The notes below the pieces were generated by a model that saw only the letters and a list, made by a program, of their open reading frames with translations, had not been told where the DNA came from and ran no database searches. A DNA stretch of 64,000 nt, taken from IMG/VR virus record IMGVR_UViG_3300037502_002993, positions 156,599 through 220,598 of that record. One strand, written 5' to 3'. Below are positions 31,971 to 60,362 of this stretch, in pieces; the first letter of the stretch is position 1, and each line of letters begins with the position of its first letter. Made by a program: the position numbers and the translations under genes.

Positions 31971-32056
31971 CCGGGGGCCTTTGGGTCCCCGGTTATGCCC
32001 TCGGCAACAAAAAAAAAGAAGACAGCGGCATAAAAGGCCCTCCCCGAAGGGAGGGC
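31971..32056. terminator. Back-to-back hairpins, each ending in TTATGCC
   Basis: Plus-strand hairpin 31971-31999 and minus-strand hairpin 32026-32056 between convergent genes. Confidence 0.7.
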
Positions 32057-54746: not shown

Positions 54747-54848
54747 GTGGTTTCCTCAGCGGGTGGGTGAAAGCTCATACCTTTTCCAATTCAAGAAATG
54801 GTCCAATACTCACTGCAAGCATCCTGTAGGCAAACAGGAGAGGTTGTC

Positions 54849-57146
54849 ATGCAAAAAATCGATCCCGAGCAGGTGTTGGGTCGCGAAGCCAAACACATCA
54901 CGTATGTCCGTGATCAATTCGGTAAGTCCCATGATGCGCTCTTCGTCAAGGAGTGGATTCACCTAAAGGATGGCACCCGCATACCGAGACTCCATTGTGT
55001 CGAAGACTACCGCCGGCCGTTTTGGCTAGTGCACGAAGGACAGCGGACCTATAAGGACCGCAAAGATTTCATGCCGCTCAACAAGCTCCAGAAATACCAT
55101 TCTACCCAGATTGATCTATCCCGTAACATCGCTACCCTCTTACGGGACTTTAGTTTTGGTCCTAACCCACCCCTGAAAAAACTTGCCCGTAATCCTTACC
55201 TCTTTGGGACTGACGTCACCACCCCTTGCCTACTTAAGGCACAGTACCGCAAACGTTATCCTGACTTATCGTCACCGAACCTGGTTGCAGGGGGTGACGT
55301 TGAGACTGATGTGGTCCATCACACCAATGACATTATCTGCATGTCAGTGACCTGTAAGCAAAACGCCATCTTGGTCTACTTAAAGCGTTGGATCGAGGAC
55401 ATTCCCAACATCATCGAAGAAACCAAAGAGGCTGCCGATAAGTACATTGGAGAGGACCTTAAGAAGCGTGGCATCACGCTTGAGGTGGTCGTATGCGATA
55501 CCCCAGGTCAAATCGTCATGACGTGTCTCAATAAGCTCCATGAGTGGAAACCGGACTTCTTCTCGTTCTGGAACATGGACTTCGATATGGGGCGGATGCT
55601 AAAAGCCCTAGAGGATGATGGTATCGACCCTAAGGATATCTTCTCTGATCCCTCCGTCCCACCGAACTATCGCTACTTTGACTGGCGTGAAGGACAAGCG
55701 CAAAAAGTCACCGCCTCAGGAAAGGTCATCTCTATCAACATCGAAGACCGCTGGCCTTGGGTTACCCACCCCGCCACCTGGCAGGTGATCGATGCCATGC
55801 CTGTGTATCGAGGACTAAGACGGGTAGATGGAAAAGACCCTTCTTACAAGCTGGGATATATCCTAGAGAAGGAGAAGGCAGGGAACAAGCTCCAGTTTGA
55901 TGACATGCGACACTTAACCGGACTGCGCTGGCACCAAGAGATGCAAAAGCATCACAAGGTAAAGTATGGGGTGTACAACCTATACGACTCCCTTGATCTG
56001 GAAATCCTTGATGAGAAGACGGAAGATCTATCACGTAAGATCACCATGTTCTCCGTCAACTCCGATTACAAGAACTTCAACTCCAACCCAAAACGACTGT
56101 GTGATGCCTTGCACTTCTGGCACTTGGAAAAAGGGGAGGTCATTGGGGCGTCTTCTGATGAGGCGGATCATGAGTTAGATGTTCACGTCATTGGGGCGGA
56201 TTCCTGGATCGTTACCCTACCTACGTACATGGCCGGGCCGGAGGGGGCTAAGGTCATGGAGGAGCTGCCTGACTACAAAACCCTTTACTTTAACCATGTT
56301 GCGGATCAACACTAAATCAAGGTCCCCTCGGGGCGAAATCCCCGTGTGAAACCTCTCTAATTGCTGGAATGCCCTGAAGAGCTGACCTACCACAATGCTG
56401 CCCGAAAGGGCCGGTTAAAAAGCATGACCCCGAAGGGGCTTCGTCTACGGATGAAGGGTTTGACAACAGGTCGGATGTGAATGCGCTATCACAAGGGGTA
56501 ACCGTGGGACCTAAGGTCCCCTTTAGCAGCCAAGGGCCTACCGGTCCCTCCTTGGAGGGACCCATGGTCAAGGTTCATCGACTATCCAAAGGCGCCCATC
56601 AGGGCGAACCGAGTAGAGTAGGGCCAGTGGTCTGGTGGGTTGTCAGTGTGGAATGGCACTGGCGGTAAGTCCCTTAAACCGAAACGGGAGGCACCTTACC
56701 AGGTAAGGCTGGAGGTGAAGATATAGTCAGTCCAGTAAAGAAATTTACTGCAAGTACCTAATCCTAATAACATGTAGTGGTTAATAAACCAGACTACATG
56801 AGGTACCGAGCTTGACCTAGTTAGCGCTTATCCCAGTGCCAGTATGATGCTCAACATTGGGCGTGATACGTGCATTATGGAGTTTTCTCAAATACAGGGA
56901 CTCTCCGAGCACCGTCGTAGAGAGTTGGGAGTGAACTTGACAGGGGGGAGCACAAATGCCCTTGAGATCACTGAAAAGATCTTTGGCATGCCGCCTGTGG
57001 ATCAGGTGTTAAAGGACTTCTGTGAGAAGCACGGCTATCCCCTTCCTGAAGAACTGATAGGGGACGATACCGTGTACGTAGAAACCGATGGGACTTATGT
57101 ACCCCTAGATGAGGAAGCCGTCGATAATGCCATCCCTGATTGGTAA
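54849..57146 (+). CDS. Split family-B DNA polymerase, exonuclease plus motif A part (phiKZ gp82-like); exons 54849-56306 and 56811-57146 (~597 aa)
   Basis: Exo motifs DVET, WNMDFD, YNLYD; splicing restores HVAD|LDLVSAYPS (PolB motif A-like). Confidence 0.88.
56307..56810 (+). mobile_element. Group I intron 3 (504 nt, ORF-less)
   Basis: Exon GGAU pairs with GUCC (56322-56325); P10 TCAAG (56317-56321) is complementary to 3' exon CTTGA; core CTAATTGCTGG, GTTCATCGACTA, AAGATATAGTC; terminal G56810. Confidence 0.92.
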
Positions 57147-57636
57147 GTACAAGAATCTGAAACTCCCTTTGGACACTCATCAACGTGTGATTAGCGGCTT
57201 CCCCGGTGTGGGGAAGTCAACCGCATTTAAATCCCTCAAGGAGCACGGGATTAAAGTGTTGGATTCCGATAGCTCAACTTTTGACAAAGCGCACTTTCCT
57301 GATAACTACCTAAAGCACATCGAAGACCGACTGAATGAAGGATATGTACTGTTGATATCCAGTCACGAGGAGGTGCGCAAAGGGCTGGAAAAACGTGGTA
57401 TTGATTACACGTTGGTCTATCCAGAGGCCGAGGCGAAGGAGGAGTATCTCCAGAGATATCGTGAACGCGGTAGTCCTGACGCCTTTGTAGAGATGATGGA
57501 CAAAAAATGGGAGGAGTTCATCATGTCCTGTGAGGAAAGTGGCGCTAAGACCCATGTACGGCTTTATGAGGGGGTATATCTCGATACCGCACTAGGGTCA
57601 ATGAACTGGTATCCGAAAACAATAAATCAGGATTGA
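57127..57636 (+). CDS. Small P-loop NTPase / nucleotide kinase-like protein; start uncertain
   Basis: ISGFPGVGKS, LDSDSS..DK..FP.NY. Confidence 0.75.
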   Translation: MPSLIGKYKNLKLPLDTHQRVISGFPGVGKSTAFKSLKEHGIKVLDSDSSTFDKAHFPDNYLKHIEDRLNEGYVLLISSHEEVRKGLEKRGIDYTLVYPEAEAKEEYLQRYRERGSPDAFVEMMDKKWEEFIMSCEESGAKTHVRLYEGVYLDTALGSMNWYPKTINQD

Positions 57637-57637
57637 T

Positions 57638-57676
57638 GGCATAAGCCCCTCCCGTAATTGGGAGGGGGGTATGTCG
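57638..57676. terminator. Bidirectional hairpin flanked by GGCATAA / TATGTCG
   Basis: CCCCTCCC-GTAATT-GGGAGGGG between convergent genes. Confidence 0.75.
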
Positions 57677-57682
57677 TTGGTC

Positions 57683-58195
57683 TCACTGATCCTCTAAGTC
57701 TAGCTGAAGTTGGCGCTCTAAATTGCGGTGTTCTTTTTCTCCACCAATGGTGTCATACTGGACGATGTCGTACAGCAGATCGCACACGTGGGGTGGTAGG
57801 TCTAAGAACTCGGGAAGACTGACTCCAAAGTGCTTGTGCATTCGATAATGGAAGAACTTTCGAATGTGGGCATAGAGAGCGCTTCCTTCAACGACGTCCT
57901 CCTTATCGTGCTGCTTGACCAGTGCCAGTGGTTGGTCAGGAAACGATTCATGGTCGAAGATACCATATTCCGTCTCATACGCCATCTGTAGGACTTGATC
58001 GGCCACCGTTGATCGCATTGCGGGAAACTCATCCAAGAGCTCATCAATACGCGTTCGGTGGGTCGCATCCACCGTCGACCCAAAACTGGCAAAGCCCACG
58101 TGCCCGTTAGAAGAGTTCAGATCTAGACTGAGTCTCGAATAACGGGCATCCTCGTTCTTCTGTGGACTTAGCTGAGCTTCCGGTCGACTAGGATA
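57683..58195 (-). CDS. -1 frame extension of 58168-59706 (tail assembly chaperone GT-like part)
   Basis: Frame is open from the slippery site at 58201-58195 to TGA 57683; no evident SD before GTG 58099. Confidence 0.65.
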   Translation of the reverse strand, partial: YPSRPEAQLSPQKNEDARYSRLSLDLNSSNGHVGFASFGSTVDATHRTRIDELLDEFPAMRSTVADQVLQMAYETEYGIFDHESFPDQPLALVKQHDKEDVVEGSALYAHIRKFFHYRMHKHFGVSLPEFLDLPPHVCDLLYDIVQYDTIGGEKEHRNLERQLQLDLEDQ

Positions 58196-59706
58196 AAAAA
58201 AGTCGACAGGACATCAATGGGTACCAGGTGGTCAAAGCGTTCCTTGAACTTCTTAGCGATAGGGGTATGGCATTTCTCACAGTTGAAGGACGGAATCGCA
58301 ATCATGGCAATCAGCGAGTCGTCCATGAAGGTGTGGACGGCTTTCAGGAAGCGTTCAATAAACTCATTACTTGAGAAGACGTTCTCAAGCAGCGCATCGA
58401 TAACCTCCTGGTCCTCTGACAGCAGTTGCTCTCCCCCCTCCTCATCGTGCTCATAGACACCCGTTACCCAATGAGAGTATTGCCGAGCTGAGGTACTGTA
58501 AGCCAGTGAGGTGATAAAGTCCCGACGATTGGCCCCGTTAGGGGGTTCGTTAAAGGCCCCTTGGGTAAGGGAGATGATGTTATCGATCCAGGCCTTACCC
58601 GCTTCCTCATACTGCTGCATATTAGGGAGACGGAGCTCAAGACCGATGTCATCAAACCACACCTTGCGGTTGGCACCATAGACATGCTCCTCACGGTACG
58701 TCTTAAAGGCCTCAGGGCCCTGTTTGACAAACCCAGTGGCCAGGTGCTTCTTCTGGACCTTAGTGAGGGCATTGTGATCCACCCGGTAAAGCCGGTTGAC
58801 GTTAATGGTCTCACGGGTAATGTGTTGACACGTTTCGATATCAGCCACACAGGGGTGAGCGTAGGGGAACCCTTGAGGGTAGATCGTGTAGGCAAGGCCC
58901 CATAGCAGGATCGGAAAATCAAGGACGTTGAGGTGCTCCTTAAGATCCGAAGGGGACTGGAAGTGTACGTTGGCGTCGATTACAAACCGCAGGGCGAAGT
59001 CTACCGCAAGTGAGGTAGCTGTCTGTGACAGATTGGAGTAGGCCTGTCCCTTGGTTGCACTGCCAATACTCACCTTCATCTGCAGGATCTGAAACTGCAA
59101 GGACGTCAGATCCGCAAGAGACGGACTCTTCAGGCGTACCCAAAGACCGGAATGGGGAAGGGGAACGTCATTGGTGGTTCCCACACCGGACTTCTTGGAG
59201 AGATAAGCAAGTACGTCATCGGCTGACCCACCTGGTGTCATGCGCTGCTTACGTGACCCAGGACGGATCTTACTGCCCTCATGATCGATAACCTGCACCC
59301 ACTCAGATCCGTCACGGGAGAGAGTGGCCTCTCCGTGCCCATTGACCTGAGCGGTTTCACTGGCCTCTCCCAGTGTTCTGACCCAGGGGTTTCCCTCTTC
59401 CGCCGTAGGGCGCGCGCGTCCTTTCTCTCTGAGTTCGCGAAGGAGCTTATCCTCACGTGCCGTCAGGGCTTTCATCAACGTCTCTTGACGCGTCATGATC
59501 TCAGTGACGGTGGAGTAGGACTCACGCAGGATGGCCACTACGTCATCGATTGAGGCTCCCTCAGCCAGCGGGGTGGTAGAAGGGAACTCTTCTGTGAAGT
59601 GATGTTTGGCTTGATTCGGGGTATACCCAACATCCTCATGTTCTTCCCACTCATCCTCTACCGGTGGGAGGGGCTTCTTGTCGTCCGGCTGGTTGGGTTC
59701 ACTCAC
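58168..59706 (-). CDS. Conserved protein (gp77 position), putative baseplate/tail assembly chaperone
   Basis: VPLPHSGLWVRLKSP, C-terminal CEKC...IDVLSTFF. Confidence 0.6.
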   Translation of the reverse strand: MSEPNQPDDKKPLPPVEDEWEEHEDVGYTPNQAKHHFTEEFPSTTPLAEGASIDDVVAILRESYSTVTEIMTRQETLMKALTAREDKLLRELREKGRARPTAEEGNPWVRTLGEASETAQVNGHGEATLSRDGSEWVQVIDHEGSKIRPGSRKQRMTPGGSADDVLAYLSKKSGVGTTNDVPLPHSGLWVRLKSPSLADLTSLQFQILQMKVSIGSATKGQAYSNLSQTATSLAVDFALRFVIDANVHFQSPSDLKEHLNVLDFPILLWGLAYTIYPQGFPYAHPCVADIETCQHITRETINVNRLYRVDHNALTKVQKKHLATGFVKQGPEAFKTYREEHVYGANRKVWFDDIGLELRLPNMQQYEEAGKAWIDNIISLTQGAFNEPPNGANRRDFITSLAYSTSARQYSHWVTGVYEHDEEGGEQLLSEDQEVIDALLENVFSSNEFIERFLKAVHTFMDDSLIAMIAIPSFNCEKCHTPIAKKFKERFDHLVPIDVLSTFFILVDRKLS

Positions 59707-60224
59707 GAGTCGCTCTCCTGCATCGGTTGGGTAAAAAGCACGCCGTCGGTTTCCTGCTCAATCGTAGTGAGCATCTGCACCCAGAGGGGGCGTACAGCCA
59801 TTTCAAAATAATCCATAATCTTGGAGTAACTCAAGGACAACTCCATCACCAATGGCAGTTCGTCTTGAGTGGGCTGGCCGGTCTTTCCAGCGTGCTGCTT
59901 GTGGGTGTCCATGATGATGGCATGAAACTCCCCCAGGTCTTTGAGAAAGGTGTGGAAGGTCTTTCTAAAGGCCTTGGGGTCTGTGAGTTCTGCATCGAGT
60001 TTTGGCAGGGAGTTCAACACACTGGTCGTAAAGCCTCGAGTTGAGAGGTGTAGGTCCACACACTGCTTGGCGAGGTCATTGATTACCTCCCATCCAAGTT
60101 CTGATTTCAGAACCGCCTCAGAAACCTGCTCCTGGGCATGGAGGACCTCTTCACGGAGTTTCTCTTCCTGCTCCGGAGTGGCTTCTCCATCGTGTTGCTC
60201 TGCTTGCTTCTCATCTGCCGACAT
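59703..60224 (-). CDS. Conserved hypothetical protein
   Basis: AAGGA SD; overlaps the next gene's start. Confidence 0.6.
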   Translation of the reverse strand: MSADEKQAEQHDGEATPEQEEKLREEVLHAQEQVSEAVLKSELGWEVINDLAKQCVDLHLSTRGFTTSVLNSLPKLDAELTDPKAFRKTFHTFLKDLGEFHAIIMDTHKQHAGKTGQPTQDELPLVMELSLSYSKIMDYFEMAVRPLWVQMLTTIEQETDGVLFTQPMQESDS

Positions 60225-60362
60225 CGTCAATATCCTTTACACAACAATAGTGGGTACGTTACACCTTTCCATAGTTTTACACGTATGAGTGTTTTGCCAA
60301 CCGCCGAGAAAACACCCAGACGTCAAATCCTGTGTTACTTACTGTCCTTCAAGGGGTTGGTT

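Follow-up and report, generated by a model that had tools for sequence, protein, structure and literature searches.

A conserved candidate -1 frameshift site in a gp77-like gene of phiKZ-related jumbo phages

Does a run of seven T's near the end of a phiKZ-gp77-like gene cause some ribosomes to slip back one base and append a long C-terminal tail, and if so, what might the two products do? The question arose at a locus in a 64-kb stretch of DNA (hereafter the window, meaning the whole stretch analysed), which comes from a phiKZ-like (Chimalliviridae-type) jumbo phage in a subsurface metagenome. An earlier note, made from the sequence alone, proposed a -1 frameshift fusing the protein at the gp77 position to the downstream ORF, pointed to a 9-bp stem downstream of the site, and read the products as the tail assembly chaperone pair of this phage group. 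We show that the observation itself is correct. We infer from sequence that the slip very probably occurs, and the same unannotated arrangement was found in every related giant phage examined, including the model phages phiKZ, PhiPA3, Goslar and SPN3US. The features of the locus are as follows.

58168..59706, minus strand: 0-frame ORF of 512 aa, homolog of phiKZ gp77, PhiPA3 gp074, Goslar_00081 and SPN3US gp39, with a GTG start and an AGGAG-like Shine-Dalgarno sequence, overlapping the upstream gp78-like gene by 4 nt.
58195..58201, minus strand: slippery heptamer T TTT TTT (X XXY YYZ in the 0 frame), followed by A.
57683..58195, minus strand: -1-frame extension of 170 codons plus TGA, of the phrog_12109 family, equivalent to phiKZ 'gp76.4', PhiPA3 gp073 and Noxifer gp72; its first 48 residues are extended and the rest is helical.
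58168..58194, minus strand: dual-coding overlap, in which the 0 frame encodes ILVDRKLS*, the end of the short form's last helix, and the -1 frame encodes YPSRPEAQL; both frames are conserved in relatives.
58067..58194, minus strand: long irregular RNA hairpin (-56.6 kcal/mol), a candidate frameshift stimulator.
58101..58148, minus strand: apical 9-bp stem (UGCCCGUUA / UAACGGGCA), part of the hairpin above.
57646..57667, minus strand: GC-rich hairpin CCCCUCCC-(6 nt)-GGGAGGGG just after the stop of the extension, between convergent genes, likely the transcript end.

The 0-frame protein matched phrog_4585 over nearly its full length (E = 1.3e-123, residues 11-511 on profile positions 32-538 of 551), tblastn found homologs in 206 phage records, and its AF2 model had a pLDDT of 84. 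For structure prediction, two rows that came from annotated-record loci were left out. A DNA-level search of the phage collection found nothing, and only protein-level searches worked for this locus. On the minus strand, the 0 frame reads ...CTG TCG ACT TTT TTT ATC CTA GTC GAC CGG AAG CTC AGC TAA, with the T7 run at 58201..58195, and reaches its TAA stop at 58170-58168. The -1 frame has a TGA six codons upstream of the site and is then open from 58195 to the TGA at 57685-57683 (YPSRPEAQLSPQKNED...), and this extension matched phrog_12109 at E = 6e-37. The fused product would be 504 + 170 = 674 aa with the junction ...STFF/YPSRPEAQ, as the earlier note had stated. The window in which a shift could occur is narrow, because the -1 frame opens 6 codons before the site and the 0 frame closes 8 codons after it, and it holds no other slippery motif. 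Beyond the extension, a hairpin analogous to the one at 57646..57667 follows the phiKZ ORF, and a phiKZ-type cDNA contig ends there with a poly(A) loose end.

A run of seven T's is not by itself rarer than chance, as T7 occurs at 4 overlapping positions in the window against 4.9 expected. The other long T-run, a T9 at 32009-32017, was considered as a second frameshift site and rejected, as it is intergenic and follows a GC hairpin. The significance of the site comes from conservation, which we examined in 56 loci comprising 28 lineages below 45% identity and about 20 phage genera. Using tblastn, the extension homolog was placed in the -1 frame of the gp77 homolog in 34 of 34 loci, and the annotated downstream gene was in the -1 frame in 16 of 16 further genera. 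In all 56 loci a 150-179-codon ORF follows in the -1 frame, and in a set of 40 sequences all have such a -1 ORF starting at the site. Homopolymer runs are error-prone, which raises the possibility of a sequencing or assembly error, or of a recent frameshift mutation in what is really one 674-aa gene. However, contigs from three other metagenomes cross the run with 0-54 substitutions and no indel, with the listed substitutions in both ORFs falling at third codon positions, and the same two-frame layout is present in isolate genomes of about 20 genera. Furthermore, none of the 150 best of 453 extension homologs is an in-frame fusion, all being 93-191 aa, as expected if both isoforms are needed. 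The comparative data thus already refute the error or pseudogene reading.

The heptamer is N TTT TTY in 55 of 56 loci, the exception being C GTT TTT at a locus designated L009. The first Phe codon is always TTT (P about 1e-13 over 28 lineages), and in genomes that otherwise use only or almost only TTC (0/14, 0/12, 1/17 and 2/19 TTT/TTC) the site is still TTT TTT. The preceding codon encodes T, I, L, V, A, S, G, Y or N, yet it ends in T in 25 of 28 lineages (P about 1e-10). Five lineage groups nonetheless have weaker heptamers, namely G or A TTT TTC, and C GTT TTT in L009; in these groups the P-site tRNA would mispair at the first position after the slip.

Could the downstream protein instead be a separate gene, starting at a non-canonical codon or by reinitiation after the 0-frame stop, with the T-run present only because Phe-Phe is conserved? 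All 20 GenBank records examined annotate two CDSs, the window has a GTG at codon 33 of the -1 frame, and conservation inside the 8-16-codon overlap could stem from the 0 frame alone. In contrast, the GTG (58099), the first ATG/GTG/TTG in that frame, has no Shine-Dalgarno match, and no start codon is conserved in position among relatives, the first NTG falling anywhere from codon 13 to codon 102. In phiKZ it is at codon 86, where the -1 ORF has 165 codons but the annotated PHIKZ076.4 has only 80 aa, and gene callers chose scattered starts. The nearly invariant F38 and G39 and the GHV motif lie upstream of these starts, and conserved residues, which begin right after the slip site, precede every candidate start in many lineages. 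The -1 frame relation holds in 56 of 56 loci, against one in three expected for unlinked genes, and the synonymous constraint on TTT and on the preceding third base cannot be explained by protein conservation. We therefore consider two independent genes very unlikely. The earlier note had named loss of the slippery site together with a conserved downstream start in homologues as grounds for rejecting its reading, and the outcome was the opposite on both counts.

The 9-bp arms singled out by the earlier note, TGCCCGTTA (58148-58140) and TAACGGGCA (58109-58101), are present, but they lie 46 nt from the heptamer, which is too far to act alone. They form the apical part of a predicted hairpin of roughly 128 nt whose main lower stem, GUCGACC (58188-58182) pairing with GGUCGAC (58080-74), begins 6 nt after the heptamer. 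Folding energy was lower than in 200 shuffles (z = -4.9 in the window, and -2.4 to -5.7 in its clade). Among relatives, 64% of cells were paired against 33-45% in slid controls, with a covariation score of 0.216 against at most 0.105 in those controls, and pair 32-128 is GC in 6, CG in 5 and UA in 1 sequence, although the structure tested was derived from the window's own fold, which biases this comparison in its favour. In helix 3, the apical stem, 69% of cells are paired, and L009 carries GCGCG/CGCGC where the window has GCCCG/CGGGC. Across 45 loci, the downstream region was more structured than control windows (mean z -1.9 against -0.5, P = 2e-7). The signal is strong in the window's clade and in PhiPA3, but near zero in several genera, including phiKZ (z about -0.9), Kwan, Haymo and AH04. 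RNAalifold on a 16-sequence alignment returned essentially no consensus structure, and Rfam gave no match, such that the support for the structure rests on per-sequence z-scores and on pair counts.

Transcriptional slippage, in which the phage or host RNA polymerase occasionally adds one extra U on the T-run, would yield the same 674-aa fusion by normal translation. Most lineages have T7-T8 runs, and because the protein product would be identical, comparative data cannot separate the two mechanisms; nothing we found addresses slippage by the Chimalliviridae RNA polymerases. Nevertheless, several lineages (the Noxifer clade with G TTT TTC, PA1C and L009) have only T5, which is short for polymerase slippage, and a predicted structured element begins 6 nt downstream, which is typical of ribosomal frameshifting. 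Consensus RNA-seq contigs of phiKZ-type infections from four studies show an unaltered T7, although contigs hide rare variants such as low-level U insertion. Transcriptional slippage is thus possible but unlikely.

Taken together, the explanation that we consider likely is a programmed -1 ribosomal frameshift. In this view, most ribosomes translating the gp77-like gene would stop at the TAA at 58168 and make the 512-aa protein, whereas a fraction would slip back one base on U UUU UUU, where both tRNA-Phe can re-pair, and read on in the -1 frame. This would give a 674-aa isoform in which the last 8 residues are replaced by a conserved 170-residue domain, with the long hairpin probably pausing the ribosome and promoting the slip. 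The downstream 'gene' would accordingly be the recoded C-terminus of the gp77-like protein and not an independent gene. Our analysis establishes the anatomy of the locus, its conservation, the codon-level constraint on the heptamer and the RNA structure signal, whereas the ribosomal nature of the shift, its efficiency, the production of the trans-frame protein and the function of the isoforms are inferred.

As to function, the interpretation given in the earlier note, a tail assembly chaperone pair, is only partly supported, and the protein is not a lambda G/GT-type chaperone. The Pfam search gave no tail-assembly-chaperone match, nor any other hit for the window's two proteins, and Foldseek hits to siphophage chaperones were weak (E 0.2-0.6, covering about 130 residues). 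At 512 aa, the protein is also 3-4 times too large. The gene is not next to tube or tape-measure genes; its neighbours are DNA polymerase, an AAA-like protein, a gp78-like protein and RNA polymerase beta, a block also seen in relatives. A sequence search of the PDB, Foldseek against the PDB and VIA-align (best Z 6.3, on helical fragments) gave no usable fold match for the body, and BFVD hits for the extension were all members of its own family, without names. However, Foldseek against BFVD and AFDB returned several 'baseplate hub assembly protein/chaperone/subunit' models, T4-like, at E 1e-4 to 1e-3, probability 1.0 and TM by target 0.45-0.59, all of them predicted models. PF12322 (T4_baseplate) covers both T4 gp26 and gp51; family member L034 scores 25.3 bits against its gathering cut-off of 24.5, L035 has E = 0.004, and phrog_150 matches at E = 1.2e-6 and 0.004, while hhalign of the family profile against single T4 gp26 and gp51 sequences returned only 14-22-column matches at probability 2-4%. 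For the further traits of a lambda G/GT-type chaperone, binding of the tape measure by the body and of the tube protein by the extension and absence from virions, the only indirect hint is that gp81 and gp82, the numbers matching locus tags Goslar_00081/82, are not mentioned in the main text of the Goslar virion structure paper.

It is about as likely as not that the body is a distant relative of the T4 gp26/gp51 baseplate-hub assembly proteins and that the two isoforms act like lambda G/GT, with a common body holding one assembly partner and the extension in the minor isoform docking a second one. A broader and more tentative reading is that every nucleus-forming (phiKZ-like) jumbo phage encodes, in a core gene block, a recoded two-isoform protein misannotated as two genes for over 20 years, whose body is a much enlarged relative of gp26/gp51. 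The 'short plus frameshift-extended chaperone' logic would then have arisen, or been kept, in a protein family and genome position unrelated to canonical tail assembly chaperones. This would identify the missing tail or baseplate assembly chaperone of Chimalliviridae and hint at what T4 gp26/gp51 do.

phiKZ, PhiPA3, 201phi2-1, Goslar and SPN3US are the working models for phage-nucleus biology and for jumbo-phage therapy. If the frameshift is real, one conserved 'hypothetical gene' disappears from every annotation, and a roughly 75-kDa isoform appears that proteomics, knock-outs, Tn-seq and interaction screens have so far scored against wrong gene models. The family would also offer a natural series of U-rich heptamers, from T5 to T8, with and without a long hairpin, useful for studying -1 frameshifting in Gram-negative hosts, as well as a testable lead on tail and baseplate assembly in these phages and on the poorly understood gp26/gp51 family.

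While -1 frameshifting in phage genes is itself established, no GenBank record examined describes it here, and literature searches on phiKZ gp77 and its homologs, and on frameshifting and tail assembly chaperones in jumbo phages, found no report of this frameshift and no functional study of the family; hits for 'gp77' referred to the Goslar capsid decorator, the PhiPA3 virion RNA polymerase subunit and the PCH45 small terminase. The annotated pairs phiKZ gp77/PHIKZ076.4, PhiPA3 gp074/073, Goslar_00081/82 and SPN3US gp39/40 are direct homologs with the same layout, but their records list two hypothetical proteins, the second truncated to an arbitrary internal start, without annotated ribosomal slippage. 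Compared with the classic -1 sites of E. coli dnaX (tau/gamma) and HIV-1 gag-pol (U UUU UUA), the locus shares a U-rich X XXY YYZ heptamer followed, after a spacer of about 6 nt, by a hairpin that is predicted to be stable, yet the predicted hairpin here is unusually long (about 128 nt), irregular and entirely within coding sequence, and no upstream Shine-Dalgarno-like stimulator was seen. With T4 gp26 and gp51, remote homology or a shared predicted fold extends over roughly residues 190-505, although the T4 proteins are 208-249 aa and lack the N-terminal about 190 residues and the extension. T4 gene 26 also yields two products, annotated as 26 and 26', but the latter is annotated as an internal C-terminal product (the last 95 codons of gene 26), not as a frameshift product. 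Finally, the lambda gpG/gpGT chaperones, whose myovirus counterpart P2 gpE/gpE+E' shifts on a T-rich heptameric slippery sequence, have a body of about 100-140 aa and are encoded between the tube and tape-measure genes. What the present locus shares with them, at the sequence level, is an inferred -1 frameshift near the end of a phage morphogenesis-type gene that would give a major short form and a minor C-terminally extended form, an extension without a start of its own, and an arrangement that is conserved although the sequences diverge.

We first examined whether the arrangement proposed from the sequence alone is present at the locus, using the following minus-strand features.

58168-59706 (-), the 512-aa ORF
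58201-58195 (-), the run of seven T's (T7), read as T TTT TTT
57685-57683 (-), the TGA that closes the -1 frame

The 512-aa ORF ends ...CTG TCG ACT TTT TTT ATC CTA GTC GAC CGG AAG CTC AGC TAA. The -1 frame has a stop six codons upstream of the run and then stays open for 170 codons, and the first ATG/GTG/TTG in that frame is a GTG at codon 33, with no Shine-Dalgarno match. A -1 slip on T TTT TTT would give a 674-aa protein with the junction ...STFF/YPSRPEAQ. The earlier note had described a slippery T run, an open -1 frame and a downstream ORF lacking a Shine-Dalgarno sequence, and this observation is confirmed. A T7 run by itself is not unusual, as there are 4 overlapping matches in the window against 4.9 expected by chance. 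The heptamer and one other run account for all T7 matches.

32009-32017 (-), an intergenic T9 that follows a GC-rich hairpin GCCCTCCC..GGGAGGGC

This second run looks like an intrinsic terminator, not a recoding site.

The 512-aa protein matches phrog_4585 at E = 1e-123, and the -1 ORF matches phrog_12109 at E = 6e-37. A tblastn search found the first protein in 206 phage genomes, all of them phiKZ-like jumbo phages, and it corresponds to phiKZ gp77, PhiPA3 gp074, Goslar_00081 and SPN3US gp39. The window itself comes from a subsurface metagenome, and near-identical contigs from three other samples cross the T run without any indel. The listed substitutions fall on third codon positions of both reading frames. 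Together, these contigs rule out an assembly error and show purifying selection on both ORFs.

To test the frameshift comparatively, we collected 36 IMG/VR loci, four isolate genomes and 16 further genera, including Goslar, SPN3US, PCH45, Vibrio, Ralstonia, Burkholderia, Klebsiella, Serratia, Xanthomonas and four Erwinia genera. One locus was truncated; together with the window this gives 56 sequences in 28 clusters below 45% identity. Wherever tblastn detected the extension homolog, it lay in the -1 frame of the gp77 homolog (34 of 34 loci), and in the additional genera the annotated downstream gene is in the -1 frame in 16 of 16. All 40 sequences examined for ORF length have a -1 ORF of 150-179 codons starting at the site. 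In PCH45, Centimanus, Haymo and Ea277G, the 0-frame tail after the slip site is 37-45 aa, compared with 8-16 aa elsewhere, and the short isoform would therefore have a longer private C-terminus and the dual-coding overlap is much longer.

We found no conserved start codon for the downstream ORF. The first NTG in the -1 frame falls anywhere between codon 13 and codon 102; in phiKZ it is codon 86, and the annotated PHIKZ076.4 has 80 aa although the open, conserved frame has 165 codons. The extension alignment is conserved from its first residues, with a YP start, a GHV motif and nearly invariant F38 and G39, which are upstream of the possible starts in many lineages. Public annotations start the downstream gene at arbitrary internal codons, giving 80 aa in phiKZ (locus L004, 1543-1785), 134 aa in PhiPA3 (L002, 1903-2307) and 68 aa in the Erwinia phage AH06 (L041, 4120-4326), where the conserved -1 frame is about 155-168 codons, and some phiKZ-like records annotate nothing there. 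None of the 20 GenBank records examined annotates ribosomal slippage, and our literature search found no paper describing it.

The heptamer is N TTT TTY in 55 of 56 sequences, the exception being locus L009, which has C GTT TTT. The first Phe codon is always TTT, even in genomes whose other Phe codons are 0/14, 0/12, 1/17 or 2/19 TTT/TTC; over the 28 clusters the probability of this is about 1e-13. The codon before it encodes nine different amino acids but ends in T in 25 of 28 clusters (P about 1e-10), and the second Phe codon is TTT in 20 of 28 (P = 2e-4). This is nucleotide-level selection for a slippery run, not protein conservation. Furthermore, an exhaustive HMMER search with the extension found 453 homologs, of which the best 150 are all 93-191 aa with scattered called N-termini, so none of these is an in-frame fusion with a gp77-like body. 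Keeping the two-frame layout everywhere is what is expected if both isoforms are required.

We next examined RNA structure downstream of the heptamer, where the earlier note had pointed to a 9-bp stem.

58148-58140 with 58109-58101, the 9-bp stem
58194-58067, a long irregular hairpin of which that stem is the tip

The 9-bp stem lies 46 nt from the heptamer, too far to act as a classical stimulator. Folding of the 130 nt after the heptamer placed it in the longer hairpin, at -56.6 kcal/mol, and none of 200 dinucleotide shuffles folds as well (z = -4.9). The main lower stem, GUCGACC with GGUCGAC, begins 6 nt after the heptamer, which is the canonical spacing. The closest relatives of the window give z from -2.4 to -5.7, PhiPA3 gives -4.2, and phiKZ only -0.9. 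When the structure of the window was mapped onto a 16-sequence alignment, 64% of cells paired, against 33-45% when partners were slid by 1-3 columns, with a covariation score of 0.216 against at most 0.105 and 57 cells with changes on both sides against 20-30 in the slid controls. Pair 32-128 alternates between GC (6 sequences), CG (5) and UA (1), linking the Pro-Glu-Ala/Ser codons to the Ser/Thr-Phe-Gly codons about 100 nt away. These values should be considered under the constraint that the tested structure came from one of the aligned sequences; RNAalifold found no consensus on its own, and Rfam returned no match. Across 45 loci, the downstream 130 nt are more structured than control windows inside the same genes (mean z -1.9 against -0.5, P = 2e-7), although several genera show no signal.

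One extra U inserted by an RNA polymerase, through transcriptional slippage, would give the same protein. Three points argue against it as the main route: some lineages have only T5, a hairpin lies at the spacing typical of ribosomal frameshifting, and consensus RNA-seq contigs from four phiKZ-type infection studies cross the junction with an unaltered T7. Contigs cannot exclude rare variants, and transcriptional slippage thus remains possible but unlikely. One cDNA contig also ends, with a poly(A) loose end, just after the stop of the extension, consistent with a terminator-like hairpin there. An analogous hairpin follows the phiKZ ORF, and the window carries its own.

57646-57667, a GC-rich hairpin CCCCTCCC-(6 nt)-GGGAGGGG between the convergent extension ORF and the AAA-like ORF

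This hairpin has no T run, and a terminator scan consequently missed it. Overall, the comparative evidence strongly supports the frameshift interpretation, with ribosomal -1 frameshifting probable and recoding of either kind very likely. Recoding of this kind is already known; what is new is a family-wide form of it that appears to be unannotated in all model Chimalliviridae genomes.

The gene neighbourhood is not a tail module, holding DNA polymerase, an AAA-like protein, a gp78-like protein and RNA polymerase beta.

59703-60230 (-), the upstream gp78-like gene (phrog_14050)
57109-57636 (+), the convergent neighbour, a small P-loop (AAA_18/AAA_33-like) protein of phrog_4182
54798-56315 (+) and 56844-57146 (+), two ORFs matching consecutive parts of the same DNA polymerase profile (phrog_3011 positions 2-494 and 507-569 of 576)

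The gp78-like gene overlaps the gp77-like start by 4 nt (GTGA), which suggests translational coupling. The two polymerase ORFs are separated by about 530 bp and look like a split polymerase gene, possibly interrupted by an intron or another insertion.

AlphaFold2 models are confident for the body (pLDDT 84) and for the extension (pLDDT 83), in which the first 48 residues are predicted to be extended and the rest helical. Searches of the PDB gave nothing usable. Against predicted-structure libraries, the body matched its own family first and then a series of roughly 250-aa proteins named 'baseplate hub assembly protein, T4-like', 'baseplate hub assembly chaperone' and 'baseplate hub subunit', with E 1e-4 to 1e-3, probability 1.0 and TM by target 0.45-0.59, covering residues about 190-505. 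Pfam PF12322 (T4_baseplate) covers both T4 gp26 and T4 gp51; one distant gp77-family member passes its gathering threshold and also hits phrog_150, the gp51 family, at E = 1.2e-6. The GenBank record of Erwinia phage AH06 already calls its homolog 'baseplate protein'. Four nearly invariant cysteines in the gp77-like body (58168-59706, -), C286, C293, C476 and C479, form two pairs (CxxxxxxC and CxxC) and suggest a zinc site; the only hhalign match to T4 gp51 aligns the CxxC motif with CPKC of gp51, at very low probability. The numbers gp81 and gp82, which correspond to locus tags Goslar_00081/82, are not mentioned in the main text of the Goslar virion structure paper.

The interpretation offered in the earlier note, a tail assembly chaperone pair, is only partly supported: the label is plausible by analogy and remote homology, but siphophage tail assembly chaperones appear only as weak structural hits (E 0.2-0.6), and the family fails two of the four defining G/GT features tested. 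Whereas the locus arrangement was observed directly and the frameshift rests on comparative evidence, the functional assignment is an inference that we consider about as likely as not. In our reading, the family is a much enlarged remote relative of the T4 hub-assembly proteins gp26/gp51, to which the frameshift would give a G/GT-like pair of isoforms, and it is not a member of the G/GT chaperone family.
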